DNA from: Lepidodermella squamata
Taxonomy: Eukaryota > Animalia > Gastrotricha
Assembly: GCA_047495785.1 (NCBI GenBank)
Contig: JBLDXI010000025.1
Span: 744,001-808,000 of the forward strand
Direction of reading: 5' to 3'
Length of the DNA stretch: 64,000 nucleotides
A program made the position numbers and the translations under genes. Positions 1 through 45,889 of this stretch are shown here, one piece after another. The notes beneath the pieces were generated by a model. The model searched no databases. It was given only the letters and a program-made list of their open reading frames with translations, and had not been told where the DNA came from. Positions within the stretch are counted from its first letter, which is position 1. Each line of letters begins with the position of its first letter.

Positions 1-312
1 AAAAATCGAATTTCAATCTCATGTTGACTCATGTCCGACCATGCAAGATAACGGATAACGGTGTCCTGATCTCAAAGCCTTGTAGCCATCATCGAAAAGC
101 AATATTCCTCAAAAGGGTGATCAAGAATTCAAATTCAATGTTCTACGGAATTTCCAAGTCGAAATTCCGATGATGTCATTCCCGCCGTGAACGGGTTACA
201 CACCTTTTCGAACAATCCCACTTGTTTACAAGCCAGACAATAGATCGTAGTTTTATTTCGCTCAATCTGTATACCTATCCACTATAGATCTATTAGATCT
301 CAATTCCTAGTG

Positions 313-597
313 TCATTCGAAATTTCGTAGTTCTCGCTTTTGGTTGTAGCTTGGCCTGTAGCAAGAACATTCACGGCGTTGGAAGTCAGCGATCCATAGC
401 TCACAGCCTGAATTCGATCTCGGTGCATTGCCGGTTCGCAGCGATCTCCTCGAGCCGATTTTCCATCCACAGCTATGCTTGATCACCCGGCACAGGTCAA
501 AGCACGATCGGCCATTTGGCCAGGTCTCCTCGGCTAGGCAGCAACACAATACAAGAGCTAAGCAAGCTACAGATAACGCCACTGGAAATCGTGTCAT
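313..597 (-). CDS. Secreted 6-Cys peptide A (CSab/defensin- or macin-like), 94 aa
   Basis: ATG at 597 gives a signal peptide (MTRFPVALSVACLALVLCCCLA) followed by a mature region with CxxxC (CFDLC) and CxC (CSC); paralogous to 1313-1603. Confidence 0.75.
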   Translation of the reverse strand: MTRFPVALSVACLALVLCCCLAEETWPNGRSCFDLCRVIKHSCGWKIGSRRSLRTGNAPRSNSGCELWIADFQRRECSCYRPSYNQKRELRNFE

Positions 598-7059: not shown

Positions 7060-7847
7060 TTAGCCCGTACCCGCCGGGTATGACCGCCATACAAGCAAAA
7101 TAGCTGGGTACGTCAACCAATCAGGAACATTGTTTACAATTTACGGCCAATCAAAGAATTTCTCGGACTGGCTCCCTTTTAAACGCAGCTGGCAGCTGAT
7201 TGGCCGGCTCTAATAACTTCAGAGCGTGTGGCAGCGCACTAATGCTACACGATATAATGCGCGCGCCCGCTTCGAGCGTGCTCACACAGTACACCATTCA
7301 TCGCCAATTGCGAGCGAAAGCAGTGCGCGATTGCGCGCGCGCCTGCACACACTCACGAATCACGATTTTCTTTCGTCTATTTCTTTCCCATTTCGGAAGA
7401 TAATCGCGCGCAAATTTGCAACCCGACCCAACTTTTCGAGCTGATTCAGAATATCTAATTTGTTTTTCGAAATTCCTCAGACTTCAAAACTTTTAGATTT
7501 CATAGCAGCAGCTATTTGTAAAATCGAAATTTCCTAATTCCTGACGAAAATGGAATGTTTCACATATTTCTAGCACAATGAAACAGCTTAGTTTCTTGCC
7601 AGTAAGTGAAAACGGGAATTTTTTTAGCCGAATTTGTAATTTTTCAAGCACAATGTTAACTTATCCTGAAGGAGAATGCCATGACTTCCCAAAAATGTTC
7701 CGCGTGCTAAACACGCCAATACTGTATGCATCCTAGTGCTCAGCTTCATAATACTTCGGGATAAATTCTAGTAATGGAATAACCCATGCGAGCGATGCGC
7801 AGTATCGCGAGTGCATTTTTTTCCATTTTTTAGACATGCCCTCATTA

Positions 7848-8618
7848 AGCTGGGTTCACGGACTCGCGATTTGTCGCGCACTTGTTCACGGACTCAGCGT
7901 TGTCGCGCGTGTCGCGGGTGTCGCATCAGTGTTTTGCGCGACAAAACGGTAGTGCGTTCACGGACTCAGCGACGCGACGGGCGCCCGAACAATAGGGCTG
8001 GGCGGCCGTTGCGTAACAGCGAGCGACAGAAAGAACAATGGATTTTGTCGCGTGTCGCGTCGCGAGGGTGAAAATCGCCTGTTTTGAGCGCGACAACGCG
8101 ACAACGCGACAAGTTCTGACAAGGCAAGAAGGCAATAATAATAATAAACCATAAATCGCCCGCCCGCTCAAGATCAAATGCCGCCCACGCAAAACACTGG
8201 TTTAATAATAACTCAATGATAAGCGCATAGGCTTTATTTTCATTTTTTCGCACGAGAACCCCCATATTCATTCGATAGAGAATTGTTTAGATTTTATTGC
8301 AGTATAAAAACCGCCACGATATTTGAAGGTAGCCATTTGACTACTGCGCGCGCGGCCAAAATGTTGTTGAAAATTATTTATGTTTTTCTTCAATTTTGTT
8401 CCGCTTTTACCCGCAATTGCGCAACCGACGCTTGGGGGCCGGGCGGAACTACTGTGGGCCCGCAATTGAGCCACAACAAAAGTTTGTCGCGCGCGACAGA
8501 ATTTTCAAGCGTGACTATCTGTGTGTGTCGCGTCGCTGTTTTCGTGCGACACACCCGCGACAGTCGCGTCGTCGCGCGCGACACTTGTCGCGCAGTCGCA
8601 GAGTTCGTGAACCTAGCT
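7848..8618. mobile_element. PIF/Harbinger-like MITE, 771 bp
   Basis: TIRs AGCTGGGTTCACGGACTC / GAGTTCGTGAACCTAGCT, TTA TSD on both sides, many subterminal GTCGCG/CGCGAC motifs. Confidence 0.8.
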
Positions 8619-9032
8619 TTATGCTAATACATTTTCAAGGAGGATTTGTCCGATCAAATAATTAGAAAACTCTTCCTCATGATCTTAGTCTTGCAAGATC
8701 AAGATTATCTTTTTATTGTCCAGCTGAAAGTGAAGTTCCATACAGTAGTAGTCCGAATCTGTTTTAACTGTCAAACAAGCCCTAAAGGGCGGGTGCGTTT
8801 CTTTATTCTCAACAACAAGGCAGAAAGCAGAGACCGCATTTCTGCTGAAAAGCTGAGGAAATGTATGTAATACTCCTTGTAAGTCTTTATTTCCCGCTCC
8901 AAAGCAGTTAAGAACAATCAATCAATGAGACGATTGGTAAATTCTCGATATTCTTCATTAAATCATAACTAAATCATCCATCCGATTCATTCAACAGACA
9001 AGTCATATTTAAAATTACTATTCCGCATCTCA

Positions 9033-9391
9033 TTAGTTCTTAATGTAGGTATATTGCCCAGAAGATTGCGTGACCTTGCTGTCGCAGCCCAGTAAGACGT
9101 GACAGAATTTGACACTGGAGAGGAAAGTGAATCCGATGCAGGTTTTAGACTCGCTACAAAAAGCAGCACACGCCGGAATATTTGAATTTTTCTTCACAGA
9201 GCCAATAGTGTCGTGATCGATAAAGCAATTATAGCTAACAGACGTGTAGCCAGCAACCGCTGAAAATACAAATGATTTCAATAGTCATAGCCAGCAGCGT
9301 CAGTATCAGAAAACCTACTAATGTTCTGCGCCGAGATAGCCGATACGACCGCCAAGAAAACGGCCAATGCAGGAAGAAAGGACCCAGCCAT
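9033..9391 (-). CDS. Small secreted single PAN/apple-domain protein (about 99 aa), 2 exons
   Basis: Exon 1 9391-9319 (signal peptide MAGSFLPALAVFLAVVSAISA), intron 9318-9260, exon 2 with the PAN pattern C-x3-C-x5-C-xGFTF-x5-C. Confidence 0.8.
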
Positions 9392-9798
9392 TTCAATTGT
9401 AAATGAGAATGAAGTTTAAAGAGAAATTATTACAATGATACTTCGCGAATTATGGGGGTATTTATTGAGTCCACCCAGTTTTCACCAGAAAAACAATTTG
9501 GTGACGCAGCATTTTGCTGCCAAAAATACGAGAGAACAAGTACTGCGTGATCGATTAAAATACAGTGTTGATATTACAGTTGAAATACCTCGTTGTCATT
9601 AGCAGCAGATGTTTAATTGTTTTTTACTTGTTTGTCGTACTCGGTATTATTTTCCCCATAAGCATTAGACATTAGATATCGTTGCTGCTCAATTCATTGC
9701 TATTTCATTTATCATTCGTGGTGGCATTTTCGTGGTAGCATTTATAATTTGTCCATTGTAACGTTCAAAATTCGGAAATATCATATTGGCGAATTGTT

Positions 9799-12291
9799 TC
9801 ACTGGGTTCCCCAGACATCGCAGCGTTTCCATCCTGCTGGGTTCATCTTCGAACCTACCGGGCAGCCAAAAGAGGTGGCGAATGGTTCGAAGTTCTTCAA
9901 TCCCTCGTTCACTCTGTAGTAAATAGAATAGCATAAAAAGTTGCAAAGTTGCATTAGAAGAAATCTAACCGCCAAGGAGGGTAGGCATGCTCGTCGGCAA
10001 GCAAGTCCGCTCTCCCTTTTTCTGTAACGGCCTGGCAGAAAGCTTGAGCAGTGCTCACAAAGAAGATCTGATCGTTGCTGAGCGGGACGCCCGGAACTTC
10101 GTACCTCTTCAGGCCATCCTCACCAAAAGCCTTTCTGAAAGCTGCATAGGCAAATTTGCGTCCAGCGTTATCAGCCGCGTTTTCAGCAAGCGTGGCCTCG
10201 CCATAGCCAGCTGCATCTGGACGCAAGGCTTGGAACTGGTCGACGAGACACTTGAGCTGCCCCTCGAATTTTTCAGCCGACGCTTTTTCCAGAATTAGCT
10301 TAGTCTCACCGTTAGCGTTGAAGTTCACTCCGTTGCTATCGAAGCCGTGCATTACCTCTGTTGCAAGCATAAATTAAAGAAAATCATCTATAAAACGAAG
10401 AAATCCAACCGTGTCCGATAACTTGTCCAGGGAATCCCCAATTCCAAGCGCTGGGCAGGTCGTAGCGGAAAGAAGGAGCAATGAAGAAGCCAGCAATCAA
10501 AGCGAACGTATTTAGGGTTGGTATATAGAAAGAGTTCCGCTCCATAATATTAGCTCCCTGCCAGCTAAAAAAATCGAATATTACCCTGAAACCCTGATAA
10601 TTTCTTTAAAAACTTACACAGCCTCGAGACGGTTAACAGGACCATTAAGCAGGCGCAACATTTTCAAATTTTTGAATTGGTCTATAGCTTTTTTGTTGTG
10701 CACAAAATCGGGGCCTGGAATGCTCAATTCATCGTACTTCTTATCGAAAGCATCGCTCAAGAGATCGGACGGGAACCCGGTTGAAAATTGAATCGTTTCA
10801 ATCTTCAGCTTGACTGCGGCCTTTGATTTTTCGTCCAGCCACGTCACCTTATCGAGACCATCGCGAATTTCAGCCAGAACCAAGTTAGTCATATTTGTAA
10901 GGTATTCGACGTTTTCCTTTGAGAAGTACCGCTTCACAAAACGACGTGCGGTGAAGAGATCAGCGAATTGCTGTTCTAGCAAATCGTTGCATGATGGCGC
11001 TGCCTCTTTCGTTTGTGCGCAGAACGCCTCATCGTCCATCCGTTCTGACTCATCCGTGGACTGAGCAACGACTTGAAGCCTGTACAGCGGCTGCGTTATC
11101 TCACAAGCGATTTCTTTCGAATAGGCATTGATCGCTGTTAGAACCGCATAGTTTTGGAAGACGCGTTTGCTTCGGTCGGCGCCGAGTTTTTCGCGAGTGG
11201 TTCCGATGAGCTTAGAAAGCTGCTCAAAGTAGGTCTGGCCGCGGAATGAGATTCGAAGATCCTGAGAATTGAGAGAATCAACACCAGCGATGCCTCCCAA
11301 TGCTTGGAAAAAACCACGCCAATTGATATTTGGACTGACTTTCTCTAGCTCCTCCAAGCGCTCATTGAATTTGTCCTCCTTGTTTTCAATGAAGTTATCT
11401 TTCTCAACGTCGTCATTCGACGTATCGCCCTTGTCACCGTCGTTATATGGCGAAATCTGCGGGATAAATAGAATAATGAAACAAAACCGTCTCTCAGTAA
11501 TCAAGGATGCTTACAAGAGCTAGTTCGACCTCAAACTCAGCCAGATCCTTTATGTATGTGTCAGAAACTGTGTATCGGTCCTTCTTGGGGATGATCGTCT
11601 TGAACAGCTTTGAGATCTCAGTGACGAACATTTCTTTAGCATCGTTCAGTGTCGCGTTGTCTTCATCGCCAACAATCAACATATGAATATTATCAGTAAA
11701 TCCGAAAAATGGCGTTGTCCTTGGACCAACAATTAGCTGATATTCGGAACCATTCGCTGGATTAGCATCGACGCTAACTGAGAAAAAAGCAGTTTTTCCA
11801 TTAATTAGCGTAGCTGGTAGAACGTATTCCAACGGAACCTTGACTTCCTCGCTGCTGATGAAAAGCCCTCCGGTATCTCGAGCGAGGTCGCGTAGAAAGG
11901 CGATGGACGATTCTGTGTCATCGAAGCGATCAGCACCATCAGTGCAAGATTGGTAGAACTTCAGGAATTTTCGCTCCGCCGCGGTGAAGCTTGAGGCGTT
12001 CGTTTTAACGAAGTCCTGTAGGGCTTTCTGCTTCAGATTTTCGAGAATGTTGTTCATTGGCCCATCACTTTCTTCTCCGTCCTTTAGAACGGTGTTGTCA
12101 GCATATCCGCCACAGGCGAACTGATAGAAGTCTTCACATGGGTCGATAGTTAGGTCCAGATTATTCAGAATGAAATTCGCTGCCTTGACGCATCCAGCAG
12201 TTGTGCAAGATCCAACGCCAACTGATGGATCAATCGGCTTAGCTGAAACGAAACTCAAAAGAGCTGAGACCGCTAGGGTAGACAAAATCAT
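9799..12291 (-). CDS. Secreted M13 metallopeptidase (neprilysin/ECE-like), copy 2, 5 exons
   Basis: Same intron positions as copy 1; spliced [25 protein letters not shown]; stop TGA at 9799-9801. Confidence 0.93.
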
Positions 12292-16277: not shown

Positions 16278-17062
16278 GTTGATAATTTCTGTAAAACGTC
16301 GCAAACCAATATTTTGTGCCCGATAGAGCTGTCATAAGTGGAGCGCGCCGGGAAAGCGGTGGAACGGCTTTGGAATTCTTCTGGATTGTGGGCAGCATCA
16401 TTGCACAATTGTTGATGCTTTAGATTTCTCTAAAATTATACTGTATTCAAGTTCATGCTTGTTGTGTTAATAATCGATATGAAATTAGGTGATTAAAGGA
16501 AATTCTAAATCTAAATAAGAAATAAATTCATTTTGACCTCTGACCTTGGAAGGAGCTTGCGTGCCAGGTGAATTTTCCGCTGTGCAGCTTATCATCCGAT
16601 ATAGTTTGACATATATTGCGGGCTGGCGGCATTCAAATTGAAACAATCACGGCGTAATATTTACTTCTTTCATCTTATTCACTGAGCCAGTCGCGTGCAT
16701 GATTGGCAGAACAAAATTGATCGCCAGTTTTTATCTATTCGTTATGCGAATCCTTATGCTAAACACCCCGCTATATGGATGAATCCTTGTAGATAAAACA
16801 TAATGTATTTTCTCCAGCTATCGTGCTATTTCCGCTTAAAAGTTTGAACATTCAAACTACAGTTTTGTTTTGATTGACGTAAAACTGGCGGCATTTGATA
16901 TCGGATTGTTGTTGAAGTGTTAGGTGAGCGGCCTTTGCTTACTAAGTGACGAGACGACTGCACACGCTAGCGGCTGATCGAACCGATTAAAAGAGAATGT
17001 AAGCTGAGGGAACAGGAACTTATTTTGCTTTTTATCGTCCCCAATAAATGCAATAATAACAA

Positions 17063-19961
17063 ATGCGCTTTTACGCTTTCTTTTTCGCTTTGCTTATTCA
17101 GAAGGCACTGCAAATAAATTGCGAGTCGATGATGGGTAATTTCGAAAAATGGATGAGCAAGCCTGAGCTGGATAACATGCTGCCAGCTACGTTGATGCCA
17201 TACTTTGACCAGCAGACAAATTCAAAAACTGAATGCTTCTCGCATTGCACTAAGAACCCAAGTTGCAGCAGCATCGGTTACAGCGAGTTGAAACGCTCGT
17301 GCAAGCTGTACAGCCATGTTGGTTCGGCGAAACCCTTGCCAACTCTGAAGGCGGACGCGCACGAACGCCATAAAATGTACTATCGCGTGAGTTTCTAGTC
17401 CATTATTTTAGAAGACTTGTAATGAAATATGAAATGGGTCGAAGACCGAAATCATGCTGTCCTAATGTAGCTTCCGATGTTTAGACAAAACACAAGAAAA
17501 CAATTACTACTTCGAAAAATCCGTACTTCAATTCCGTCTTCTCCCTTCTTCTCCCAAGTCTTCTCCCAACTTTGGGCTCCTTCCATCCCTCTGCAAATGA
17601 TTTTTCCTATACTAATGCCTTCTAGGGCCACTTCTGTCCCCGAGGTTGGATAGCCGACAACGAAAGCGACCGGTGTTATCTTCTGCAGAATGAAACCTTA
17701 TGGCGCCAGTATTCTTGGAAGGTTTGCGAAGAGAACTTCCAATCAGAACTAGTCACCTTTCAGGATGCTGGTCAACGGCGCAGGCTATACCAGGTAAATT
17801 CTGAATTCGTATGATCAAAATATTCGAATGCATTCAAATAGATTCTTCGAACTAACACACCTTCAAACACGACAAAGTGGTGGACAGGCTACGCGTCATT
17901 CGCAGCGAATGTGTGGCCGCGGCCCATTCAAGAAATAAAAGGCTACATCAAGCGAATGGGAGATATGGGCGGACACGATATCGTAACTTTGAACAGCGTG
18001 AAAGGTCCACAGGAGTGCGCTAACCAGTGCGATCGCGTGTATCGAGATACCTGTGTTGCTTTCGTCTACTATCGCCGCGGCAACTACTGCACGCTGAAAT
18101 CTGCATCCTACAACGCACTCTCTGGTTCGGTCGACGCGGACGCGTGGATGTACGATAAGGTGCGCGGGCGGCCTGTAACACGGCGGAGAGATTTCAAGTT
18201 GAACACTAGTACCCGTGATTGCTACGATGGGACTACTGGTAATGTAATGACGCTTCAGAAGTGCTACGACTTGTGCAAAGCAACGCGGGGCACATGTGTC
18301 AGCTTTCAATTTCAGCCGGCTCCTTCAACTCCAGCTGGCACATGCTGCCTTTTCAAGAACTCTCTTTTAACATATAGAGCCTCGCAATCTGGAACTGATT
18401 TGTATGATGTGGTAGAAATCGACAAAGGGCGCTGCCCTTTCAGCCAACGGTATCACGACAGCTGTCTGGTTGTATCACCTAAAGAACTTATAGCGCCTAG
18501 GGATCAAGATGCGAGATGTGCTACGATGGGTGGAGTTTTGACAGCCCCGATGGATGGAACGCAAAAATACCGAATTATAGGTCACGCTGCCGATCGAATA
18601 AACAATTTTGGCTTTTCAAATGCAGCCTTCACAGTGGATTATGGCGCTGTGAACCCGGCGACCTATCCAAATCCGGCTAATTGGACGACTCAGATAAACA
18701 AGCTCTACTTAGCCGGGTCCCCAGCATATGAACTCTGGCCGTGGTCAGAAGCGTAAGTTACATTACCGAAATCAGGCAAACGGTGGTAATTTGTAATTCA
18801 GGCCAACAAAAAATTCATTTGAGTGGCTCTGCGGGGCGGGAATGAATTCGTTCAGCGACTTTGTCGTGGACACACCGGTCCGGATTCTCTGCGAAATTCG
18901 TAATTTGGCCTTTTATTTTGGAATTCTTAATTGTAAGTCTTCATTTTTTCCAGCTGTATCTCAGTCTTATCCCCAAGATTGCAAATTCACACCGTCTGGT
19001 CGCGAGTACAACGGCAGGATGGCGACGACTGTTAGCAAGGCTCTCTGTGCCATGTGGAGCTCAACCGAATACTCGAATCGGACCAAAGCTTTCCCCGAAC
19101 TTCACGTGTCTCACCGTTATTGCCGCAATCCTGACATAGCTAGAATGCCGAACGGGCCGTTCTGCATGCGCGACGACAGCAAAACCACGCCAGAATACTG
19201 TGACCCTCTACCAATGTGTCGTGAGTGAACACATTAAACTCTCTAGTTCACGTTTCTGATTCAATTTGGGTGCAGCCGAATCTGATTGGGCGCTGGGACA
19301 GGTTTTTGGTGATCCCACCATTCCTTACGCAATCATAAGCCCAGCCGCTGACTCTTTCGAATGGACAACGCAGCGATTCGATTTCAAAGCGAATGGAATT
19401 TGCAGCTTGGATATGAAAGACTGTGAGTTTGAGATAGGATGAATATTGGTAACCTCTGATTGCTTTTCACAGGGTGTCCTTATTACTTTGGGGGCAGCTG
19501 TTACATCATCTATAAGATTCCGAGACTACGTGCTGAAGCCACAGCTATCTGTCAACAAACGAATTCTCACCTGTTAACTATCGAAAGCGAGGCAGAGCAC
19601 TATTACATCAACAGTATAACAATGAATCTTGGAAGTTTGTAGTTTCTCATATATTTTATATATCAACAGTAAGAATTTATTCTTGATAGGTAAATGGGCG
19701 GCTTCGAGATTCGGCTACCACCTTGGCTTGACACGGCGCGATCTAAATGATCGCTTTACAACTTGGGACACAGGAACCCCAGTTACTTTCACGTATTATT
19801 TGCCAAACCGGCCTTATCCAGCTGGTAGTACGCAGACTGCGACGGAGGGCTGTATTTATTTTGGATATGAATACCAGGACGAGCGAGCGAGCGAGTGGTA
19901 CGACGGCAATTGCTTAACAGTCGAAGCGTATCCCATTTGCGAAATTGAACTTACAGGATAA
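17063..19961 (+). CDS. Secreted PAN / C-type lectin / kringle multidomain protein, copy 1 (intact)
   Basis: Exons 17063-17386, 17626-17793, 17842-18752, 18802-18899, 18954-19220, 19276-19422 and two further exons to 19961. Order: signal peptide, PAN, CTLD N-half, PAN, PAN, CTLD, kringle (YCRNPD), CTLD C-half, CTLD. Confidence 0.87.
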
Positions 19962-20412
19962 AAATTCGGAAATGACGTCGGGTTCTAAACGTGAATTATG
20001 CGTAACTGATATATGACGAATGAGGTGACCCAATCTGGCATGAAAATCTATCATTGGCAGTCACAAAAATAAATATATTATTTCATCTAAGTAAGGCACA
20101 TTAGGGATTAGGGTACACTATAGCCTTTTTCAAGACAGAAATTCTTGTTAAGATATGTAAAGTAATTGAAGCCTAAGACTAAGATCTTCAAAAAACGTAA
20201 AATAAAGCAAGAAATGACTCAGGCATGCTTTGTAATGTTTATCTGGTCCCATGCATAAGTATGAAGAAAATAGCAGAAGAAAAGGGAAATTCCAGCGGCC
20301 GAGATTATAAGAATTTAAATAGATTAATAGATAAATAGATAAAATAATTTAAATTGAAATTTCAGCAAAGCATAGTTGTTATCAATTAATCAATTTCGCT
20401 TGGAAAAACGAA

Positions 20413-23400
20413 TCACTCCTTTGATTTCTTATGTTTGACCTTCTCCTTTTCGGCTTCAGGCGTATGACGGCAGCATAGCACAATGCTGATGACGGTTGCA
20501 ACGGCTAAAGCAACGCCAGCTATAATGAGTCCTAGCCTGAAGGCATCGTTGAAAAACCCAGCAGATCCTGGATCAGACTGCCCAGCTTTCAATGGCTTTG
20601 ATTTCAGCTTGACGTCTTTCGCCGTGATCACGAGACCGTCGAGACCAAACATGTCTATGAAACTCGCATCGTCTTTCATAGAGCTCACAGCAGTGCTGAC
20701 TGACTGCTGCACAGTTTCGGTCGTGATTTGCTTATCGCTGCTCACAGAGCTGTTGAAGGTCGCAACAAAGGCCTTGATTTTCTCACTGGGATAAAATACT
20801 CGGTCAAAAGGGAACTATGTGTATGGTGTATGGTTTTAGTTAAGACTTACATGTAAGTAATGCTGGTTATTTCTGTTTGCGGCACAACGATGCCAGCCTT
20901 TCGGTAGATGTTCTGCATCTGATCGATGAGTTCCTGCTTCAAGGCTTGATACTGCGGGCTCGAGGTGTCATTCAGTACGCTTGGGTCGATATTTGACCCA
21001 TTTATCATGATTTTCGCAGCTTGAAGTTCCGTCAAAACCTGCGACCAAAATGCATCCTCGGGTTTTATAGTTGCAAGAGGTGTGGTTGTCGATTTTGTAG
21101 ACGATGTGGTTGTAGTTGTAGTCGAAGTTGTTGTTGAACTTGAACTTGAACTTGAAGAATCCGAAGTTACTGATTCGCCTTTACTAGTTGTCGCTGTAAT
21201 TGCCGATGCAGTTGATCCATCCGTCTTCGCAGTTGCTGTTGAAGATGACGTAGTAGTCGTTGGGGAGCAGTCGAACGTGAAAAAAGTGTTATCGACATCT
21301 TGATAGTCGCAGCCTGCCTGGCCGCAGTGCATACCGAACCCCAGCTTTACTTCATTGTTTCGAATCATATCAGCCAGGCCACTTACAGGCATGTCCGCTA
21401 TCATTTTTGTTGTTATGTTGTCTCTCATGTGCCATACCTGATTAGTTGAGACAATAAAAAGGCAAGAGTACACAACTTTTTAAACTCGCATTAACGTTGA
21501 GCTGATCATACTCAACTATCACTTTTGGAGGACTGCCTTTAGTTATTTCTTGTAGCGCTGTTTGGGTGCTAAAGGCAAGGCCGTTATACGCAGAACTAAT
21601 CCAGGTATTTTGAGTGAGTTCAATCGGAACGGCACTGAAAACACCAAATGATGTGTTGTGCCGCGGCGAGATGACCACACTCAGCCCGCGAAAATTCGAG
21701 CTAGTACCGAAGTAGCGATAATTTGGCGGTACATCGGTGCTTCGATAGATTGAATTCGAGGAATCAGCGATCATAAAGGCGAACCCATCGTTTGAGAATG
21801 GGCCTTGTGCAGAAGTTGGAGTTCGAGAGGTGAATGAAACTTCTGCCCTCCAGCACTTATCAACCGGAATCTAAAAATAATAGCCTTCAATATGATTGAT
21901 CATTCACTTTAAATGTATCCCTAACTGGATCATTCGCCCATGCTGATCCAAACTGCCTGATTTGTGACGGGGTCTTCGGGTATGTATCAGCGTTCGACAG
22001 TGTAAGCGTGTTCCAATTGATATTCACCCTAGTACCGTATATTTCCCAATAGTTGACTGCGAAGATTTGGTGATAAACGAAGATTATATAACTTTTTCAG
22101 AATCTTACTTTGAACACTCATATCGTTCTTCTTTGCCGATAAGTTGCGAATAAATTGAGGGTTCGTGCCATTCAACCCGAGGGGGACGAACGGGTCTGGT
22201 ACAATAGGTTTCACGGGACTGAAATCGCGGTAAAGTATCGATTGGTTTCCTGAGATTGCGGAAACCTCAACTTTGAGTACATCCGTTACATCGAAGGTAC
22301 TCGTCAGGTTAGCATGGCGAGCTCCGAAGCCAAGGTAAAGATACTTCTGATTCAAAATGGGAAATTGAACATCGTTAAAGCATTGTAGAGTAACGCCTGC
22401 TGATGGGAAGGTCATTTGGGCTGAGAGCCCGTTCTGGCTGATTTGAATGGAAACTTCAATTATTTGTTGGCCGCCGGCTAAAAGATTCTGATTCTTGATA
22501 GTCCTGCCGCAGGATGCGATCGGGAAATTGAAAGGAGTCGGGCCCAAACAATCCACCGCATCCTTGTTCAAAGTAGTACCGAATCCAGTTATAACCTGGG
22601 CAAGCGGGTTGATAACGAAACCCGTTGCAACAAAGTTGCATTTATAGCAGTTCAGGCTATAAAATGATCCTAGGCCTAAAGGGGAGCCAGCGTAGTCTGA
22701 AAAAATCAGTTTTATCGACCTTTTAAAAAATTCATTTTCTATTTCATACTTGCCGCAGGACTCGAGTAGTTAGCATTGCATTTTGGTGGTCGAACTCTTG
22801 TATTTCTCTCTGATAACCAGATACCGAGACCCTGTGAAGTGCCATTCATGCGAACGCTGATTTTGATCGCAATGTCGTTCACGGGTGGTAATAGTTGATT
22901 TGACCACATAGCTCCTTCAAGGGGTATGTTGCTACTAGGGTTCATAGGGTCTTTCTCGATCAAACGAACGCTATCACTGAGGCTATCAATAGGTTTAGCA
23001 GGGTATATCTCCCAATTTGTATAGCTTGATCGATTGGATGACTGATCGAAAAAGAAGGCTGATATGTTTCTCAACGGTCGCAAGTCGTAGAATTCAACTC
23101 GAGTTATAATAACGTTGTCCCGAACATCTTCATTCGAGGCACCAAAACCAAGGAAAGCTCTACCACTTGTCGTCAGATCAGCCATACCTTTCACGGTAGC
23201 ATTCGACAAGCAAGCATTTGTTGATTTTGCGATGCGATCGTAAGTCGTGATCGTCAAACTATCCCCCGCAACTTGAACCAGCAGAGTGGCATTGATCGAC
23301 TTTGACTGATCATCATAACCGAGTGGACATGTGGCTAGTTGTGTTTTTCCGTCGTTGTTACGCTCTGATTCAATCATCGGCTGTAGATTTGCAATTGTTG

Positions 23401-24765
23401 GCGAGAAGTCGGCGTACATCTCTCGCGATTTCGTATTTAAAGATAGGCGCAATCCGCGGAAGTTGTAATGATCGGCTCCAGAAGCCCTTGAGGTTTTATT
23501 GGCCCTGGCCGTCAAGGTTGTAGCCTTGTCGACGATGTAGACCAGCATTCCGCTGCCTTTATCTCCCATAGCTTGAATCGAAATGTCAACCTCCAAACGC
23601 CAGTTTGAAACTCCTTTGTTTATAGGCTGGAAAGTAAGTTATATATGAAATCTAACCTCCTTGCTTTTCAAATTTATTCTCACAATTCTGCTCCAGATGG
23701 ATCCGTTGTTGCAAACTTCAGGTTTCTTGGGTTGTAAAGCAAGCCGAGTTGGATAAAGATTTGAAGCCTGCCCCATTGAACGCCAAACACTCTCAACCGG
23801 GGGTTCGAAGAAGAGCGACTGCTCGGGTTTGTACCTAGCCAACGGCAGATCGGTCGGCAATGCTAGCATACCCAGCATTTCTTGGCTTGGGGTTGGATAG
23901 GTCGTGGGATGGACCATTACTTCATATTTAGAACAAATTTGTTGAAGGTCAGATAGTTTCCAACTCGGCAGAGCGACGCCATAGATTGCAAAACAAGCGT
24001 ATTGCCCGTAGGAAAGGTAGTTCGTGTTGTCTTCTAATCTATATACAAAACATTTCTATCAAATAGGCCAGAATAAAAAACAGTAATGAACCTTCTGCCC
24101 AGGGAAATGAATCGGTCATTGGTCGGTGCTAACACCGGCATATCCAAGTCATAGGAGCCCTCCCTTCCCGTGGCGTACGGACCGCAACTCAGTTGGTACG
24201 TGTGGGAATTCGCATCATAAGTCAATGTGATCAACTGCCACGCTGTAGTATTGCATGGAACAGTAATTTCAGAGCCTTCGTCCATAGGATTCGCGGAAAT
24301 TTGATTTGACTTAGGATAGTTAACCCAAACATGCAAACCACGGCCAGTAGTTGGGTCGGTGTACTCGAACAAGGGACCATTTTTCGTAGCAGTGCTTATT
24401 CGGAAAAACGTTGCTATGGTCCAAGAGTTGTCATCAGCTGAAAGATCCAGTTCTTTGCCTTGCAGCTTGATATAGCCATCCATATCACTCCTACATACTT
24501 CAATGGCGGAGACCTGAGAGCCGAGACTCGAGGATCCCAAGGTATTAGGACCAGGTACGTAAGCGTAGGCGCCGGAATTTACTTCTCCATCCAGTCCACT
24601 GCCACTGACATCCCTAACGCCGAACTGGCTGTTCAGTGGCCAATAGCCGATCGGATAGGGCGGTGATGGCTCTGGCAATGGCGGTAGCGTGCAGCCTTGA
24701 ACAAGCTTGTGCAGTGCTGAAATAACCAACAAAGTAAGCGGCATCTTTTTGAGATAAAAGCTCAT
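20413..24765 (-). CDS. Type I membrane protein: LamG/ConA-like + 3 L-type lectin domains + Ser/Thr stalk + SEA-like domain + TM, copy 1
   Basis: GYWPLN..DVSG LamG-like start; three repeats of the L-type lectin signature (GSIWS..NWRLEV, GAMWS, GSAWA..DGFAF; each ends (Y/F/K)LGFG); Thr/Ser tract; SPQYQALKQELIDQM SEA-like helix; TM and short basic tail. Start at 24765 or 24744. Confidence 0.8.
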
Positions 24766-25032
24766 AGTACTGCTCAAGGATAGCGAAGCGATCTCCGATG
24801 TTTATTAAACGGAGCAAATAAACTTCTCTCCGGTTATTGCAATTTATTTTGACCATCTGATTAAAAATGTCAGAGAAGCAAATCCGAATCAACATAGGAA
24901 ATTGTGTAACTGCTCGGAGCAATGCCCGTGAATCGAGATTTAGGATAATTCACATATTATATACTCAACCAACGAAGGAGTAATAAATTACCTTCTCCGC
25001 TTTGATATTATCTTTTCACATCATCCCTTGAA

Positions 25033-25504
25033 AGGCAAATTTGTAAATCCCACCTAGAAACGTCCAGGGTAAAAATTCGAATATTCCGCGGTTTCCCCTA
25101 TTTTCTTCACTCAATATTATTGATTGAAATATTTGATTTAGTAATGGAAAGGACATCATGTCTTAGGACGAAGGAAGAAAAGATCTACTGAGACCAACCA
25201 GCATATTACATATGATCTCTCAAAGATCTTTCCATTACTATAAATCAAGTGCGGAGAACGCATAAATCAATATTAGAAGCTCCCAGGAGTTATGGTTAGA
25301 GATCCAGAAAGAGGACTAAGAAGGCTCTAGATCTTCCCTAAGAGGGTACAAAGGCGCCGCAGGACCAAAAAGTCGATTTTTCTGACATTTTGCTTGTACA
25401 GCGGTTTCTAGGTCATTCAGCCATTCTGACCATTCAGCGTCATTTCAGCGGAATTTTTGAATTTTTACCCTGGACGTTTCTAGGTGGGATTTACAAATGT
25501 GCCG
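25033..25504. mobile_element. MITE with about 55-bp TIRs
   Basis: GGCAAATTTGTAAATCCCACCTAGAAACGTCCAGGGTAAAAATTC and its near-exact reverse complement near 25448-25503; apparent TTGAA flanking duplication. Confidence 0.7.
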
Positions 25505-25704
25505 TTGAAATAAATACTTGCCCGTTTTCGACAACATTTCGCGTCATCTCCACTTCTCACGATTTCTCACAAAGATAACTAACTTCTGGTGCAATTCTCA
25601 CAAATATGGCGATATGTTTTGCTTATAAATGCTTATGATTCCATCTTTCATTTCCATCTTTCTCGATTCAATATTGGGAAACTCTCGTGTCATGTTCTTC
25701 ACTT

Positions 25705-28183
25705 TTAACGCAAATAAACTTGTCTTAATATCACCAAATTCGAGAAAGCAGAAATCAGGTTGGCTGTTGGCACGACGTTCACCAGCGAAATATGGTTTTC
25801 AGAGAGTATAATGCCGATGAAAATCGCAGCGAGTAACATGATGACGTATGAATAAACAAAGGCTGTTATTGCTTTCACATCGCTATACGTTATCCGATCC
25901 ACCCGAGCGTGTCGAGCCTTGACAAGAGAATTCAATAAAAACGCCGAAAACAGCGATATCACAAGCGGTATCCCGGCGAGTCCGAACGCCAATATCGCAA
26001 AAGGATAGCTGGTTATCCCACCAAATATTGACTCAAATTGTTGGCACAGCGTGACGGTTGGCTGAAAGGCTAAGCTGTTATCATGCTCAGAGAAAATCAA
26101 CGGTAGGAGTTGAGTTTCATTTGACGCAGGGCTCAACAAGAGCGCAATGGTCATCAGAATCAGGCTAAATGCCATTGTAAAAGTTGACAACTTCCTGCTG
26201 AGCTGCTGACGTGAGGAATCAATAAAAACCTGATAGTTTCTGCGCCTATTACTCGAGCGAGATCGTGTTGCATTAACCGAAAGGTAGATTGGATTTGAAG
26301 TTTCACGCCGGATATTTGAAGCATTACTTAGCTTTAAAATCAGCATTTCCAGCTTCTGAAAACAGCCGTGAATGACGCAGATTGAAGCGCTGAATGAAAG
26401 AAATGTTTGCATCGAGCATAACACATCAAAGCGGCTGAGCTTCGCCTCGATGCCATAGAACAGGCTGACAAGGAACGAAAGAACATTTCCAAGCAAAATC
26501 AGCTGGCTCGTCGCGACATCTAATTTAGCCGATCTCATTGTGTTGCGCTTAATATTAACAAAAGAGAAAGCTGACGAGATCAGCAGTCCTATTATCGAGA
26601 TTGAAATGAAAACTGAGCTGATATTGCCGGATACAATCGGCTGTGGAATAATAATGATCACCAGCGAGTCTTTTGGAAGAGCATTTCCATCAGTTCTCCA
26701 GTATAATTTGTCCCAATGAACTACAGCCGGATCGCCCTTTCGATTAGATTTGTAGTAACCGATTGTCACCATGTTCGTTCCATTTCCGAATTCGTTAAGT
26801 TTGACTTGATTAAAAACGAATGGCATGCTGCCTGTAGGCCAGTGGTTAGCCTTGTTGTAACTGTAGTCACCCTTTAGGCCTAACACATCTATCCGACTAA
26901 TAGCTTCTAGCATCACATTGACAATGAAAGATCCATTCCTTCTGAAACTATCCGAATTTGTTGTCCAATCCGCCAGGGTGGAATTGAAATCATTTCTCAG
27001 AATATGTTCAGTTTCGTTCAAAAACAGCCCAATTAGGACGAATCGGTCGTAGTAAGTAGGAATCCAGTATTCCCAACCAACAGCTAGTTCGAGTTTATCA
27101 ACACTGTTAGCTAAGTAGCTGTTGAACCAACTACTGGTTACGTCCATTGAGTCTGAAGTATCCTGGCCAAAAATCTCGCTGATCGGAGCATCCCCATAGA
27201 ATATTGTCGTTGCCAAGATTTCTAGCAACATTTTCTTTGTACACCACCCAGCTACGATCTGAGGTATGTCTGAGTTCTCGTTGTAAGCATTCCATGAGTA
27301 ATGAAGATGAACAAACCCTGGCCCAAAAAGGTTATAGCGGTAGAGAAAACAGCCGACCATAGCGCTGTTGACGACATTCAGTAAGATAATCCGTGGTTTT
27401 CGCCGTTGAAGCTCGTCAAATGTTGTCTCAAGTTCGTACATATCGTCTGTGTCGAGTCGCAGCTTAGCCATGTAAACTATAGTGACGTTGTGAGCTTCCA
27501 TTCCATGAACAACAAAGCTGTCGATCACGTTATTGTAGGGGCTTGTATCACTGATTAGGGACACCCTTTTCCACCCAAGTTTATGAACCATGGCTACGAT
27601 GCTATCCGCGGTATAGTCCTGTTTCTCGCCAAACGGGACGAAATTTGGGAATTTTCGCCTTTCGTAATACATTTTAGGTGCAAGTGGGTAAATTACAGTC
27701 TGAAAAGCAGAAATTAAAACACTAAAAGATTTGGATTAAAGAATTTACCCCTAGCATGTTGAATGATGGCATCATGTAGGCAGCGATAGTTTGGGCAATG
27801 TTGCAAAATTCAGCTAGTGCTACGATAGGCAGGCGGTTTGGTGTAGCTGCGTTCTCTCGGAGTTTGTCAACCATTCCTGCCATGAACAAGGCATCATCGC
27901 CCTGATCATCGATCAGCTCGAAAGCGAGATCGTACCTGGTCAGCCAGTTGGGCATCTCTCGCAGCTTTTGCAGCGCTAAATGAGCTGCGACTGTCGTAGT
28001 CGGGCCAAGTGGTATTGCCCCTGAATACATAATCGAAGTGATTATCGACAGAGTTTGCCTATTGTTGGAAGAATTCCTCGGCGATTCAAAAACAAAGAAA
28101 GACGGCATAGTAGCATTCATTAGAATCAACGATACAGACGTTTGCAAGGTGATGGAAACAATCATCATTAGAGCAAGTATCAT
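25705..28183 (-). CDS. Divergent class C GPCR (Venus flytrap + 7TM, GABA-B-like topology), 2 exons
   Basis: Exon 28183-27749, 49-nt intron, exon 27699-25705. Signal peptide; ANF-receptor-like motifs (ERRKFPNF, KLGWKRVSLI, PRIILLN); no Cys-rich domain; seven hydrophobic segments; essentially no C-tail. Confidence 0.82.
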
Positions 28184-28545
28184 CGTTATGTATTGCGAAA
28201 TGCTTCACTCCCGAAATGTGATCTAAATTATATATATAGATGAAGTTTTCCAGTGAGAGAATCTGGGTGAGGATGCAGCTTCGAAATGTCAGGTTCTTTT
28301 CCCGGCTGAAATGTCAAGATATGGTTACATTTCGCGTGGTACGGTGTTATCCCGTTTTAGCATGAGATAATACAGCAAACAGCCATTAGAACCTTTTTCC
28401 GCTTTTTACGTCAAAGTTTCATTTCCGAAAACACGGAAATCAACAGTATTCATCATATTGTGCGGGAAGAGGCGTCAAAATGCTTTCAAATCAGCCTCAT
28501 TTAGGATGGATTTTCACCGGAGCTCATTAGCTTTACAGAATATTA

Positions 28546-28626
28546 TTAGCGAAACCAAATTTGCCTGCTGCGGAACCAAATTCGACTGTAGCGGAACCAA
28601 ATCTGCATTATGCGGAACCTAATTTT
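28546..28626. repeat. Degenerate 21-bp minisatellite (GCGGAACCAAAT core, 4 copies)
   Basis: Core recurs at about 21-nt spacing. Confidence 0.6.
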
Positions 28627-29854
28627 AGCTACGCCAAAGGTCGCTTTTTGAATATTTCCACAAAATTAAAGCTATGCATGAATTCTTAAGAAAAGAATGC
28701 ACCATGCACCGAATTTTACCCTAAATTAATTTTTACCATCAAGATTCAAGTCCCAAACATCTTCAGGAACAGAAATTCCGTCAAAAAATGACCGAAAGCG
28801 TGACAATGTCAAAAAACAACGTACAGGAAGGCTGGCTAAAAATATTAATATAACGCAGAGGGTGGGCGGGATCGAAAAAGCCTCGTGGTCTTCGCCAAAA
28901 GATTCAAACGACTATACTGTGTCTGTCTATATCCGAAAGCGCATTTCTTTTCCTTGTGCAAAGGCTTTCAACGGCTCCAATTACCAATTACGTGTTTATC
29001 ACGAAAAGAAAACGTTGAGAAATTGTCACTGTATGTTTGAAAGAACATCCAGGGTATACATGTTGCTTCATGTCATTTAGGCTACATAATTGTGGATCTG
29101 AAGGACATTGAAACATTGCAGTTAAAATTTATTTCACACGACGTCTGTACGATAAAGACTATTTTCTATAGAATATGCGGCATCATTTTTTCTAGTAAAC
29201 AGAGAAGAAAACGCGTCTCATTTAGAATATATAACACCAGAAAAAATAGCACCCCAATTCATCTACCAAAACCATGAATTTAGTTTCGGTATCTGAATTC
29301 ATGGGGGAAAAAGTTGCAAAATTCTGGGCATTAATTTAATTCCGAAAACTCAGAAATCCCCTAATTCCTGGGCACAATTTTCGAGCAATAATACAAAACT
29401 AAAGTAATTCACCCAGCCAAAAAATCAGTTCTTTCTATAAAATCCCATTTTTTCACAATGTTGGTGCTAGGTAACCGTTCATTGACAATAGAAAATCAAA
29501 TGGAATCGATAGCGATACGATTTTGTCGACATAGCCCTAGGCAAAATAAACTAAAAGTATATCTCAGTGCTATCAAGAGAAAATGGGGGAGGTGCATAAG
29601 CACCTCATGTTACATGGCAAAATTTCAAATAATACCCATCTTTAGAGTTCCAATGAGAAAGTGTGTCACTTCGTAATTAATACTCAAGGAATAAGTTTTG
29701 GAGCATGAAATCGGATGAATTTCGGAAATCCGTAAATTAGTAGATTAGGATACTCACAGGGCACACAGAGTTATCTTCAAAAGGAAATTTTACGAACATA
29801 TAAATCAAACAGCTTTGGTCTTTAAATTATCCGTGTTTCCTTGTAAATTGCGTG

Positions 29855-32800
29855 TCAGCCATTAGACGTGTCTTTCTTTCCCTTCCCGTCTTCGCCCGTT
29901 CGACGGCAGCATAGTCCAATGCTAACTACGGCTACAATCGCAAGAGAAACACCAGCTATAATGAGTCCAAGCCTGAAGGCATCGTCGAAAAAACTGGCAG
30001 ATCTCTGGTCCGACTGCCCAGCTTTCAATGGCTTCGATTTCAGCTTGACGTCTTTCGTCGTGATGACGAGGCCGTCGAGACCAAACATATCTATGAAACT
30101 CGCATCGTCTTTCATAGAGCTCACAGCAGTACTGACTGATTGCTGCACAGTTTCGGTCGTGATTTGCTTATCGCTACTCACAGAGCTGTTGAAGGTCGCA
30201 ACAAAGGCCTTGATTTTCTCACTGGGGTACAATAATCAGTCAGAAGGGAACTATGTGTAAGGTTTTAGCTAAGACTTACATGTATGTAATGCTGGTTATT
30301 TCTGTTTGCGGCACAACAATGCCAGCCTTTCGGTAGATGTTCTGCATCTGATCGATGAGTTGCTGCTTCAAGGCTTGATACTCCGGGCTTGAGGTGTCAT
30401 TCAGAACACTCGGGTCGATATTTGACCCATTTATCATGATTTTCGCAGCTTGGAGTTCCGTCAAAACCTGCGACAAGTATGCATCCTCTGGTTTTATAGT
30501 TGCAAGAGGAGTGGTCGGAGCTTTCGACGTTGGAGAGATAGCTGTTGTAGTTGAGAGTGAACTCGATGATTCCGTTGTAGTTGAGAGTGAACTCGATGAT
30601 TCCGTTGTAGTTGAGAGTGAACTCGATGATTCTGTTGTAGATGCCGGCGTCATAACTGGGAATGAAGTAGATTCCTTCTCAGTGCTAACTTTCGGAGAGG
30701 TTCCAACAGATGATACGTGAACAGTCAATGATGTTGCAGTAATAGGCATAGCCGTATTCTTTGGTGCGCAATCGAAAGTGAAGAAGGCCATGTCGATATC
30801 TTGGTAGTCACATCCCACCTGCGGGAGGCAATGCATGCCAAAGCCTAATTTCGACTGACCAGATCGAATCATATCTGCTAAGCCAGGAACTGGCATGTCC
30901 GCTATCATTTTCGTTGCTCTGCCATCCCGAACATGCCAAACCTTGAAAAGCAATTGATTGATAAGCAAAGAAAATCGGTTTTTCGACGAGTAAAGAACTC
31001 GAGGAATCCTCGTGAAAAATTAGTCTACAACTCACATTCAAATAAGTTTGATTGTATTCAATGACTATCTTCGGATTGTTCCCTGATATTACAGAATTTT
31101 GAAGCGAAGTTTGTCCGCGAGCAGTTAAGCCGTTATAGACGGAACTATCCCATGAAGCCGGGGTAATTCCAGCCGGTACAGGGTTGATTACTCCGAATGA
31201 TGTGTTCTTTTTTGGTGATATTACTATCATGAGACCTTGAAATGTCGCATTGGTGCCAAAGTAGCGGGTCACAGGTGGAATATCCGTTGATCGATAAATT
31301 GAATTAACTGGCTCTGCAATCATGAAGGCGAAGCCATCGCCTTTGTAAGGTCCTGTATAGTCGGCTGGGCGTGCATTTACTACGAATTCAGCTCGCCAAC
31401 AGACATCACTCGGAACCTAGGGGATCATAGAGTTAAACGGGCTACGAGAAATGATATTAGTAATAAGTGAAACTTTTTCATTGGCCCAGGCTGATCCATA
31501 TTGCAGACTTTGATTAATGGGCGGCATTTCGCCATTGGATAGGGTCAACTTCCCCAAATTCAAGTTGACTCGCGTCCCATATATTTCCCAATAATTTACT
31601 GTCATATCAATGCAATTCATAAACATGCGAGCTTGGAAAAACAAAACTTACTTATTCCGCTCGTGTCGTACAATTTGGCCGATAGATTTCGTGCGTAAGT
31701 AGCGTTTCCCCAACCCGTCCTCACCGGGACCAAGGATTCTGGGGCAATCTTCCCCGCAGCCGAGCTGCCTAACCTGGTCGACGTCGTTTGATTATTTGAA
31801 GTTGCATATACCTCAACCTCGACGATTTCCGTCACATCGAGAGTACTTGTAACATTGGCATGCCGAGCTCCGAAACCCAAATACCAGCTTTTCGTATTCA
31901 GAAACGGTAGTTGAACGTCGTTGTAACACTGAATTGTCATATTTTGCACTGGGAAATATAATTTGGCGGAAAGTCCATTCTGGCTAATGTCCATGTGAAC
32001 TTCTAAGATTTTTTGACTGGGTGTTAAAAGGTTGAGAGCCTTCAATTGGTCGTTGCAGGACGCGATCGGGAAGTTGAACGGCTGGGATCCCAGGCAGTCT
32101 ACGGCATCCCAGCTGTTTGTCGACGCTTTCGCTGTGACAATTTGAGTTTCGGGATTGATAACGAGCCCAGCTGCCATGAAACTATATTTGTAGCAATTCA
32201 GCCCGTAAAAGGAGCCGAAACCGAGTGGCGACCCTTCGTAATCTAAAGGCAACAGATTCAAGAATCTCATAATTAAATGAAACGGTTATTATTTCGTTTA
32301 CTTGAAATCGGGCTGCCGTAGCTGGGGTTGCATTTCGGCGGCTTCACCCATGTGTTCACTTGCGAGAACCAAATTCCCAATCCCTGTGAGGTGCCATTCA
32401 TTGCAACGGTCACTTTAATAAGCACATCTTGAACGGAAAAAAATCCCGTCGACCAAATAGACCCTTCAGCTGGAACATTGGTGCTTGGCGAATTAGGATC
32501 TTTTTCGATCAACCTGCCGGATTTAGTCTGCGTTCGCGGGCTAGGAAACTGCTCCCATGCTGCGGATGTATTTCTCACTTGGTCGAACCAGAGAGTCGAT
32601 ATATTTTTCATTGGTCGAAGGTCGTAGAATTCGACTCGCGTGATTGTTACACCATCATGGGCGGCTTCATTAGACGCTCCAAAGCCAACAAAGGCCCGAC
32701 CACTCGTTGTTAGATTCGCCATACCTATGATCGTTGAGTTTGTCAGACAAGCGTTTCCTGTTGCCCTGATTCGGTCCCATACCATCACCGATAGACTATC

Positions 32801-45487: not shown

Positions 45488-45625
45488 TGAGAGAAGCACG
45501 AAATATAGATCGAGTAAAACTCATTCACCTCGTGAAATCTCGTCTCCACTGGCCTGTCGGCTCGTTCCGCCTCGATTTCACTCGTTTCATTCGTTTTAAT
45601 CGATCTATATTTCGTGCTTCTCTCA
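45488..45625. repeat. Palindromic element 1 (26-bp perfect arms, internally symmetric)
   Basis: TGAGAGAAGCACGAAATATAGATCGA ... TCGATCTATATTTCGTGCTTCTCTCA. Confidence 0.8.
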
Positions 45626-45676
45626 TAAATAGATTCCTACTCATGTTATATCATACAAATATAGCATTCGTTTTAA

Positions 45677-45889
45677 AAATATAGCGTTAGTAGGTATGCT
45701 CATGCAATATTTTTTGATACAGCACTCGAAAATCGTTTATATCTGAACTCGCCGAACTTACTCATCTCCACTTGTCTGCGACTCGTTCCGATTCGTAAAT
45801 CTCGGCCGGCTCCGTTCAGATATAGACTCTTTACTCTTGCTAGATCAGACAAATATTGCATTATGAGCACATCTACTAACACTATATTT
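45677..45889. repeat. Palindromic element 2 (interrupted long hairpin)
   Basis: Paired blocks (GTTAGTAG, TGCTCAT, GCAATATT, TATATCTGAAC) and a core shared with element 1. Confidence 0.75.

Follow-up and report, generated by a model that had tools for sequence, protein, structure and literature searches.

C-type lectin-like domain of a gastrotrich protein family, probably split around a PAN–PAN–CTLD–kringle cassette

Extracellular mosaic proteins are usually organized as beads on a string. There are host domains, however, that are split by others: in integrin β, the β-I domain lies inside the hybrid domain and the latter inside the PSI domain, and in laminin, the L4 domain lies inside an LE module. 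C-type lectin-like domains (CTLDs) have a long loop, which in snake-venom C-type lectin-like proteins extends away from the core instead of packing against it. Here we describe gene A, which lies on the plus strand at positions 17063–19961 of a 64,000-nucleotide stretch of the Lepidodermella squamata genome (contig JBLDXI010000025.1, positions 744,001–808,000; henceforth the window) and whose product very probably contains a CTLD interrupted in its long loop by a cassette of four domains. In contrast to the usual beads on a string, a common recognition fold would thus accommodate four complete domains within the loop that binds ligands, and one of the four repeats the fold of its host. A nested CTLD of this kind had been put forward in an earlier note, made from the sequence alone, whose author did not recognize the architecture; full-text literature searches on C-type lectins combined with kringle and PAN/apple domains, or with domain insertion, gave no description of this architecture. 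Both the CTLD fold and domain insertion are known. New are the use of the CTLD as a host and the unusual size of the insert, which itself includes a domain with the fold of its host. Insertions were found in 20% of multidomain proteins in a 2026 survey (PMC13114784), the text of which mentions neither lectin nor kringle.

In its predicted fold, the split domain resembles canonical long-form CTLDs such as struthiocalcin-1 (4uxm), CEL-I (4wqq), and mannose receptor CRD-4 (1egg), with Z scores of 12.7–13.7 and up to 130 of 141 residues aligned. It has in common with them the N-terminal cysteine hairpin, the cysteines of α1 and β5, and a WIGL-type strand. Unlike them, it has a long loop interrupted by about 397 residues that make up four autonomous domains, it lacks the C2–C3 disulfide, it carries GQV for EPN/QPD and WTT for WND, and neither of its pieces has a Pfam Lectin_C match. 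Snake-venom C-type lectin-like proteins (factor IX/X-binding protein 1iod, echicetin 1oz7, and convulxin) are among the best matches of its N-terminal piece, and 1iod_A is the best structural match. In the venom proteins, however, a short loop is swapped between two subunits, whereas the loop of the gene A protein is predicted to bear PAN–PAN–CTLD–kringle within one chain.

The arrangement also parallels integrin β and laminin L4 in that inserted domains divide the sequence of an extracellular host domain rich in disulfides, but the host fold is a different one, and four domains are inserted, including one with the fold of the host. The same types of modules are found together in other proteins: PAN and kringle modules in plasminogen and HGF, and a CTLD and a kringle in the complex of tetranectin, a CTLD protein, with plasminogen kringle 4 (PMC5687179, PMC10770464). 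This complex is formed by two proteins, whereas in the gene A protein the kringle is covalently joined to the CTLD loop. Furthermore, plasminogen has a protease domain and the gene A protein does not. By analogy with tetranectin, the adjacent kringle may dock on the loop face of the CTLD, which we treat as a lead and not as a finding.

The proposed split domain and the gene that encodes it

Gene A comprises eight exons, all joined at GT–AG introns, with an open frame of 782 codons (782 amino acids); the local GC content is about 43% and the introns are about 50 nt long. The domains of its product follow in the order PAN, N-terminal half of a CTLD (H1), PAN, PAN, complete CTLD (CTLD2), kringle, a piece encoded by a 48-amino-acid exon (H2), and a C-terminal CTLD (CTLD3). 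It has no transmembrane part and, as had been correctly claimed, no protease domain. With its putative signal peptide, the product is probably a secreted mosaic protein.

We consider it very likely, from sequence and structure prediction combined, that H1 and H2 fold into one CTLD with the cassette looped out of its long loop and with a probable Cys142–Cys632 lock. Amino acids 109–193 would form a β0/β1 hairpin with its own disulfide, α1, α2, the strand of the WIGL type, and the long loop as far as its middle, where the cassette of some 397 residues (two PAN domains, an entire CTLD, and a kringle) would exit the domain. The chain would come back in the 48-residue exon (amino acids 590–638) that supplies the rest of the long loop, β3, β4, and β5. 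The two pieces would make up a single CTLD, most likely locked by the disulfide between α1 and β5 (C1–C4; Cys142–Cys632), and the four inserted domains would be closed into a loop located on what is, in ordinary CTLDs, the ligand-binding face. Of the earlier proposal that some 450 residues are looped out, the insertion stands, but its size comes down to about 397 residues (amino acids 194–590 of gene A), or about 424 if counted from the WWTGY strand to β3. The features of gene A are as follows (window coordinates).

17063–17386, 17626–17793, 17842–18752, 18802–18899, 18954–19220, 19276–19422, 19473–19634, 19690–19961, plus strand: the eight exons, GT–AG, open frame
17063–17386, plus strand: exon 1 from ATG to GT donor, hydrophobic N-terminus and PAN domain 1, amino acids 1–108 (PAN_1, E 2.7e-7)
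17626–17793, plus strand: exon 2, H1a, amino acids 109–164, with the CP.GW...CY hairpin cysteine pair, helix-1 Cys142, and the ELVTF strand (H1 profile against PDB)
17842–17928, plus strand: start of exon 3, H1b, amino acids 165–193, containing KWWTGY, the strand equivalent to WIGL, and the long loop's first half, which extends to WPRPIQ
17929–18420, plus strand: insert part 1, PAN domains 2 and 3, amino acids 194–357 (PAN_1, E 3.1e-10, two stretches; PAN_4)
18421–18899, plus strand: insert part 2, complete inner CTLD (CTLD2), amino acids 358–500 (motifs CPF..RY..C, ARC, ILCEI; tetranectin match)
18954–19220, plus strand: insert part 3, kringle exon, amino acids 501–589, phase-1 introns on both sides (Kringle, 48.4 bits)
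19276–19422, plus strand: exon 6, H2, amino acids 590–638, phase 1-1 (ESMFold2, AlphaFold2, profile test)
19473–19961, plus strand: exons 7 and 8, canonical six-cysteine CTLD3, amino acids 639–782, and stop codon (Lectin_C on both exons)

The coding sequence of CTLD2 is divided between the end of exon 3 (to 18752) and exon 4 (18802–18899). H2 consists of the second half of the long loop (ESDWALGQ), β3 (PYAII), β4 (EWTTQ), and β5 with Cys632 (GICSL). The span first given for the nested domain, 17626–19422, runs exactly from the first base of exon 2 to the last base of exon 6.

The exon joins of gene A are confirmed, without RNA, by an intronless paralogue of 781 amino acids (L025:1647–3989, minus strand), because it is colinear with the spliced gene A over every predicted junction, both sides of exon 6 included. 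Further intronless copies are present in the genome, and all intronless paralogues hold H2 in frame, as expected if exon 19276–19422 is joined in.

Sequence and structure tests of H1 and H2

Judged by its profile matches, H1 (amino acids 109–193) represents a CTLD's N-terminal part. Built from 21 family sequences (alignment A1), the profile matched 70 PDB sequences at E ≤ 10; of the 60 listed, nearly all go by the name of a CTLD, the remaining ones being CTLD folds named otherwise. The best match was DEC-205 (E 2.4e-6); echicetin (E 2.5e-5) and many snake-venom and myeloid CTLDs followed. The CTLD matches range from E 2.4e-6 to 1e-3, with profile positions 3–80 mapping onto residues 1–77 of single-domain CTLDs. 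The cysteine pair of the long-form hairpin, C112 and C125, does not vary among the sequences (24/24); conservation extends to CP.GW and CY, and the WIGL-type strand KWWTGY, which is kept in all members, aligns with the WIGL of PDB CTLDs. All motifs that the earlier note had listed for H1 (FCPRGW, RCY, WKVC, ELVTF, WWTGY) and for H2 (ESDWALGQV, PYAII, EWTTQRF, GICSL) are present.

In their cysteine counts, the two pieces complement each other. Over the 24 sequences, three cysteines are invariant in H1 and one is invariant in H2 (24/24 each), and together they reproduce the four-cysteine pattern of CTLD2 of the same protein. Elsewhere, the counts in well-covered domains are even: the invariant cysteines number four in PAN1, six in the kringle, four in CTLD2, and six in CTLD3, and PAN2 has four with an additional pair in most members. 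C142 in helix 1 of H1 and C632 in β5 of H2 are retained in every sequence (24/24). The inner C2–C3 pair, which the CTLD fold does not need, is absent from the split CTLD, where Y, F, or H is found at the place of C2 and F, L, I, or V at that of C3; CTLD2 lacks this pair too. The inner pair is thus lost as the earlier note described, with Y and F in its place and a few other residues in some relatives, and the helix-1 and terminal cysteines are kept in 24/24 sequences. The Ca2+- and sugar-binding motifs EPN/QPD and WND are absent from H2, which displays W-A-x-G-Q-V/I-F and E/K/D-W-T-T instead. The split domain is therefore unlikely to bind sugar in a Ca2+-dependent manner, and going by its motifs it should properly be named a CTLD and not a lectin.

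Searches for homologous proteins with a full-length paralogue and with CTLD3 gave no matches. As no outside CTLD set was thus available, the test of joining H1 and H2 used as its template the family's own Pfam-validated CTLD3 profile (143 columns, global profile–profile alignment) and not Pfam Lectin_C. Joined H1 and H2 scored 30.5 and covered all 143 template columns, compared to 21.7 for H1 and 12.8 for H2, so that with this template, in place of the Lectin_C hidden Markov model of the original proposal, the joined halves outscored either fragment. When the columns of H2 were shuffled, the score was 20.3 ± 2.1 (maximum 26.7; 0/60 reached 30.5), and when H2 was replaced with other 50-amino-acid stretches of the protein, it was 18.2 ± 2.3, the top ones being those of CTLD2's C-terminal part. 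With this true C-terminal part joined to H1, the score was 35.1. The separation is seen in global mode only: in local hhalign runs, the joined halves (34.6) did scarcely better than H1 alone (32.6).

ESMFold2, which was given H1 and H2 as separate chains, assembled them with an ipSAE (interaction prediction score from aligned errors) of 0.83 (runs 0.88, 0.83, and 0.82), compared to 0.01 for the best control. The runs share at least 88% of contacts, and the partner's predicted local distance difference test (pLDDT) score is at least 81; the mark applied to ESMFold2 was reached by 51/78 solved complexes and 2/108 mismatched pairs. The contacts with the lowest error, namely those of the helix-1 cysteine with the H2 cysteine (C34–C43), of β1 with β5, and of the WWIGY strand (β2) with β3, follow the canonical CTLD order, and C142 and C632 are predicted to touch with an expected error of 0.4 Å.

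AlphaFold2 was run on an unbroken chain, amino acids 105–639 of the intronless paralogue, with alignment A8, in which three rows have misplaced tails. In this continuous chain, H1 has a pLDDT of 73–89, and H2 forms three strands at a pLDDT of 70–85. The model was compared with 48,161 PDB chains, and the top matches are CTLDs without exception (50/50), at a root-mean-square deviation (rmsd) of 2.1–2.5 Å. The best structural match has a Z score of 13.7 (1iod_A; rmsd 2.1 Å, 101 residues aligned) and the next one of 13.6 (126/131 aligned), followed by one with 130/141 aligned. The CTLD matches cover 101–132 aligned residues and a model range of 5..535, from H1 through H2, their ends falling at model residues 530–535. 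As more residues are aligned than H1 contains and the range ends inside H2, the structural matches draw on both halves. Contact between the halves, which the earlier note had wanted to see in a structure prediction, is thus predicted by ESMFold2 (ipSAE of 0.83 versus 0.01) and by AlphaFold2 (CTLD matches extending from H1 to H2) alike. Considering (i) the cysteine parity, (ii) the profile test, (iii) the ESMFold2 assembly, and (iv) the AlphaFold2 model, H2 would therefore be the complement of H1, although it is unrecognizable alone.

The gene family and the origin of the insert

Two paralogues with the same architecture, in which the motifs of H1 and H2 recur, lie further downstream in the window.

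37472–47092, plus strand: paralogue B (H1a 37854–38012, H1b 43874–43930, H2 46418–46567)
50194–56740, plus strand: paralogue C (H1a 50552–50710, H1b 53538–53594, H2 56067–56216)

In the 121-Mb genome, exon-2-like sequences occur at 58 places and exon-6-like sequences at 46. Where both are found, they are 1.4–8.6 kb apart and on the same strand, and the exon matches put the family at about 45–58 loci. Some family loci form near-identical pairs on different contigs in mirrored order (C7/C32, C28/C33, and C23/C54); both haplotypes, or else homoeologous regions, may be present in the assembly, and 45–58 loci may overstate the haploid number of genes. The full order PAN–H1–PAN–PAN–CTLD–kringle–H2–CTLD was found in 22/22 further copies examined in this genome, down to about 27% identity. 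The mean pairwise identity is 0.54 for H1, 0.50 for H2, 0.54 for the kringle, and 0.42–0.46 for the PAN domains. In comparison with copies from other species, identity is highest for H2 (0.46) and for the kringle (0.45). As H1 and H2 are conserved like the full domains, they are not decaying remnants.

Outside this genome, a search of 1.84 billion protein representatives gave 14 matches only. The best of these are open reading frame calls on metagenome contigs, which end by read-through into a GTAAGT donor directly after the kringle. In three such contigs (L027, L028, and L051), the next exon past the kringle is H2, followed by CTLD3. A fourth one (L049, the P0004 gene) likewise contains the H2 exon, with an apparent one-base frameshift just before the conserved cysteine (L049:1880–2120) that is either an assembly error or the mark of a broken copy. 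A feature search of the ESM Atlas returned only generic PAN+CTLD clusters, none of which has the same architecture. A family that is large in this genome and nearly absent from 1.84 billion representatives may constitute a recognition repertoire, as yet undescribed, of a lineage that has been sampled poorly. Furthermore, Pfam sees neither half of the split domain, so that such proteins are annotated as being without it.

Full-length intronless paralogues occur in tandem pairs (L025:1647–3989 and 7321–9987, both on the minus strand; L026:1594–3921 and 7252–9594, both on the plus strand). One intronless paralogue, with a frame of 1099 amino acids, has a larger insert, the segment between PAN2 and the middle of the kringle being duplicated internally. 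Another family locus (L030) has an in-frame stop within KWWTGY and, on this sequence evidence, is probably a pseudogene. A retrocopy origin of the intronless paralogues was considered and is unconfirmed: the L025 copy is followed by an AATAAA signal but no poly(A) remnant at its 3′ side.

The 5.8-kb intron of paralogue B contains, at window positions 39245–43671 on the plus strand, adjoining open frames of 507 and 968 amino acids with a GC content of 0.50. The 968-amino-acid frame encodes an apurinic/apyrimidinic endonuclease domain and a reverse transcriptase (RVT_1, E 8.8e-33). From its frames and domains, the element looks like an intact non-LTR (long terminal repeat) retrotransposon of the long interspersed nuclear element (LINE) type, and an element of this kind could account for the intronless paralogues.

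The introns on either side of the cassette indicate a route by which a nested domain can originate. In several paralogues, a phase-1 intron is found exactly after WPRPxD, 13 residues beyond the WWTGY strand. Directly before H2 there is an intron in all intron-bearing copies examined, and its phase, read in gene A, is 1. On both sides of the cassette, which extends from E-I-x-G-Y through PAN, PAN, CTLD, and kringle to P-M-C, the introns thus have the same phase. Three exons, namely those of the kringle and of H2 and the first one of CTLD3, are phase 1-1. The remnants of the long loop that flank the insert are 13 and 16 residues long, and their sum is close to the length of an ordinary CTLD long loop. 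Moreover, among the intron positions known from CTLDs is one that lies downstream of the WIGL motif (PMC514892). This suggests an origin by exon shuffling, in which a phase 1-1 cassette entered a phase-1 intron inside the CTLD, downstream of the WIGL strand.

Alternative readings, function, and neighboring features

Several results weigh against a CTLD made of H1 and H2. No CTLD was among the PDB matches of an H2 profile, and the hhalign match of H2 to the family's CTLD3 profile is weak (last 20 columns, P about 0.01). Pfam Lectin_C (gathering threshold of 22.6 bits) gave no match at E ≤ 10 to H1 or H2 alone. As no alignment rows pair a diverged H1 with a diverged H2, there is no co-evolution signal. 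The structural support is all predicted, and because the predictors know the CTLD fold, a pass indicates likeness and not binding in vivo. In the AlphaFold2 model of amino acids 105–639, most of the insert, where few rows are aligned, is unmodeled. The first AlphaFold2 run, on the full-length protein with alignment A5, was uninformative (mean pLDDT of 52.7; below 50 in the C-terminal half), because MAFFT had put the ends of several fragment rows onto H2; alignments A3, A4, A6, A7, A9, and A10 were dropped on account of misplaced fragments. At the gene level, the sole public run with window positions 17000–20000 is DNA: it yields one contig in which the introns are present and no splice joints are seen. 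Exon 6, with its 1-1 phase, could be skipped without a frameshift.

Of the explanations that compete with closure of the domain on itself, complementation between molecules, in which H1 of one chain would pair with H2 of another in domain-swapped dimers or chains, survives best, although we consider it unlikely. The top matches of H1 include loop-swapped snake-venom proteins (echicetin, E 2.5e-5; 1iod_A, Z 13.7), the ESMFold2 assembly of separate chains fits cis and trans pairing alike, and a tether of 397 residues permits either. The AlphaFold2 model of a single chain, however, closes the domain intramolecularly, and the kringle abuts H2 while H1 abuts the cassette, as for an insertion in one loop. 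Closure would therefore, according to the model, take place within one molecule.

The probability is lower still that exon 6 is optional, in which case the main product would skip it and contain an incomplete CTLD, and the nested form would be a minor isoform. Skipping would keep the frame, and the one public run that covers gene A is DNA. H2 is, however, in frame in all intronless paralogues, its identity across species (0.46) is among the highest of all parts, and skipping it would leave Cys142 unpaired. The gene model as such is also supported by the DNA contig of the public run. This contig, which is another haplotype or strain, differs from the window by 22 bases and two indels in 3 kb. 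The 652 predicted non-coding bases contain both indels and nine of the substitutions; the 2349 coding bases contain the other 13, of which 6 are synonymous and 7 are not. The density of single-nucleotide differences is thus 1.4% in predicted non-coding sequence compared to 0.55% in coding sequence, and both indels are inside predicted introns. Two of the substitutions, R159W and R160H, lie where H1a ends, whereas the single change in H2 is synonymous.

The least credible alternative is that H1 is a decayed CTLD remnant and exon 6 an unrelated linker or small module, the likeness being coincidental and amplified by fold-biased predictors: H2 alone has no significant CTLD match, Pfam sees neither piece, and predictors can score from fold memory, but both pieces are as conserved as bona fide domains and each has an invariant odd cysteine, the two are found together in all loci examined and also in other species, shuffled and substituted controls scored far lower, and the predicted contacts are in canonical strand order.

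The domains around the two halves are for the most part recognized by Pfam, which in gene A assigns PAN_1 to exon 1, two PAN_1 stretches to exon 3, Kringle to exon 5, and Lectin_C to exons 7–8. The PAN_1 (PF00024) scores are 30.7 bits for exon 1 and 40.2 bits for the two stretches in exon 3 (cut-off of 21.4), and Kringle (PF00051) scores 48.4 bits (cut-off of 34.3), with conserved C510, C532, C557, C571, C583, and C589. In the intronless paralogue, Pfam finds three PAN stretches, and the CTLD3 region matches Lectin_C with E 3.2e-10. CTLD2, located between PAN3 and the kringle, is complete but divergent: it has no Pfam match, and its five-row profile matches tetranectin with E 0.006. The two PAN domains, the second CTLD, and the kringle that the earlier note had placed after H1 are thus all in place. 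In the metagenome orthologue P0002 (L027), CTLD2 retains the canonical sugar-binding signature GEPN...DCA...FICE, whereas the copies in this genome are without it and have SEPP. From these motifs, the inner CTLD may be a true lectin, though only in certain species.

If H1 and H2 form one CTLD, the gene A product would be a secreted, non-enzymatic, multivalent binding or recognition protein, in which the split CTLD serves as a conserved structural clasp. This assignment of function draws on domain content and family expansion only, which counts against it; a large, tandemly clustered family does suggest a recognition repertoire. A fuller picture is possible but, taken as a whole, rather doubtful: the split CTLD would be a conserved, non-binding, disulfide-locked clasp that joins both ends of the PAN–PAN–CTLD–kringle string into a closed-ring recognition head, the kringle would perhaps be docked on the CTLD loop face, and the family would have one origin, through exon shuffling into an intron within the domain, and form a lineage-specific secreted recognition repertoire of at least 45 diversified genes in a sparsely sampled group of animals. 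The apparent tolerance of the CTLD long loop to a very large insertion suggests a use in the engineering of CTLD scaffolds.

The window also contains the following features.

3061–4741 and 10614–12291, minus strand: two similar gene fragments with a Peptidase_M13 N-terminal domain (E 1e-20), which by their domain look like a duplicated neprilysin-like gene pair
25705–27672, minus strand: exon with an ANF_receptor ligand-binding region (E 9e-8), within 20413–34889
59692–60789, minus strand: exon of a glycosyl hydrolase family 35 beta-galactosidase (E 1e-27)

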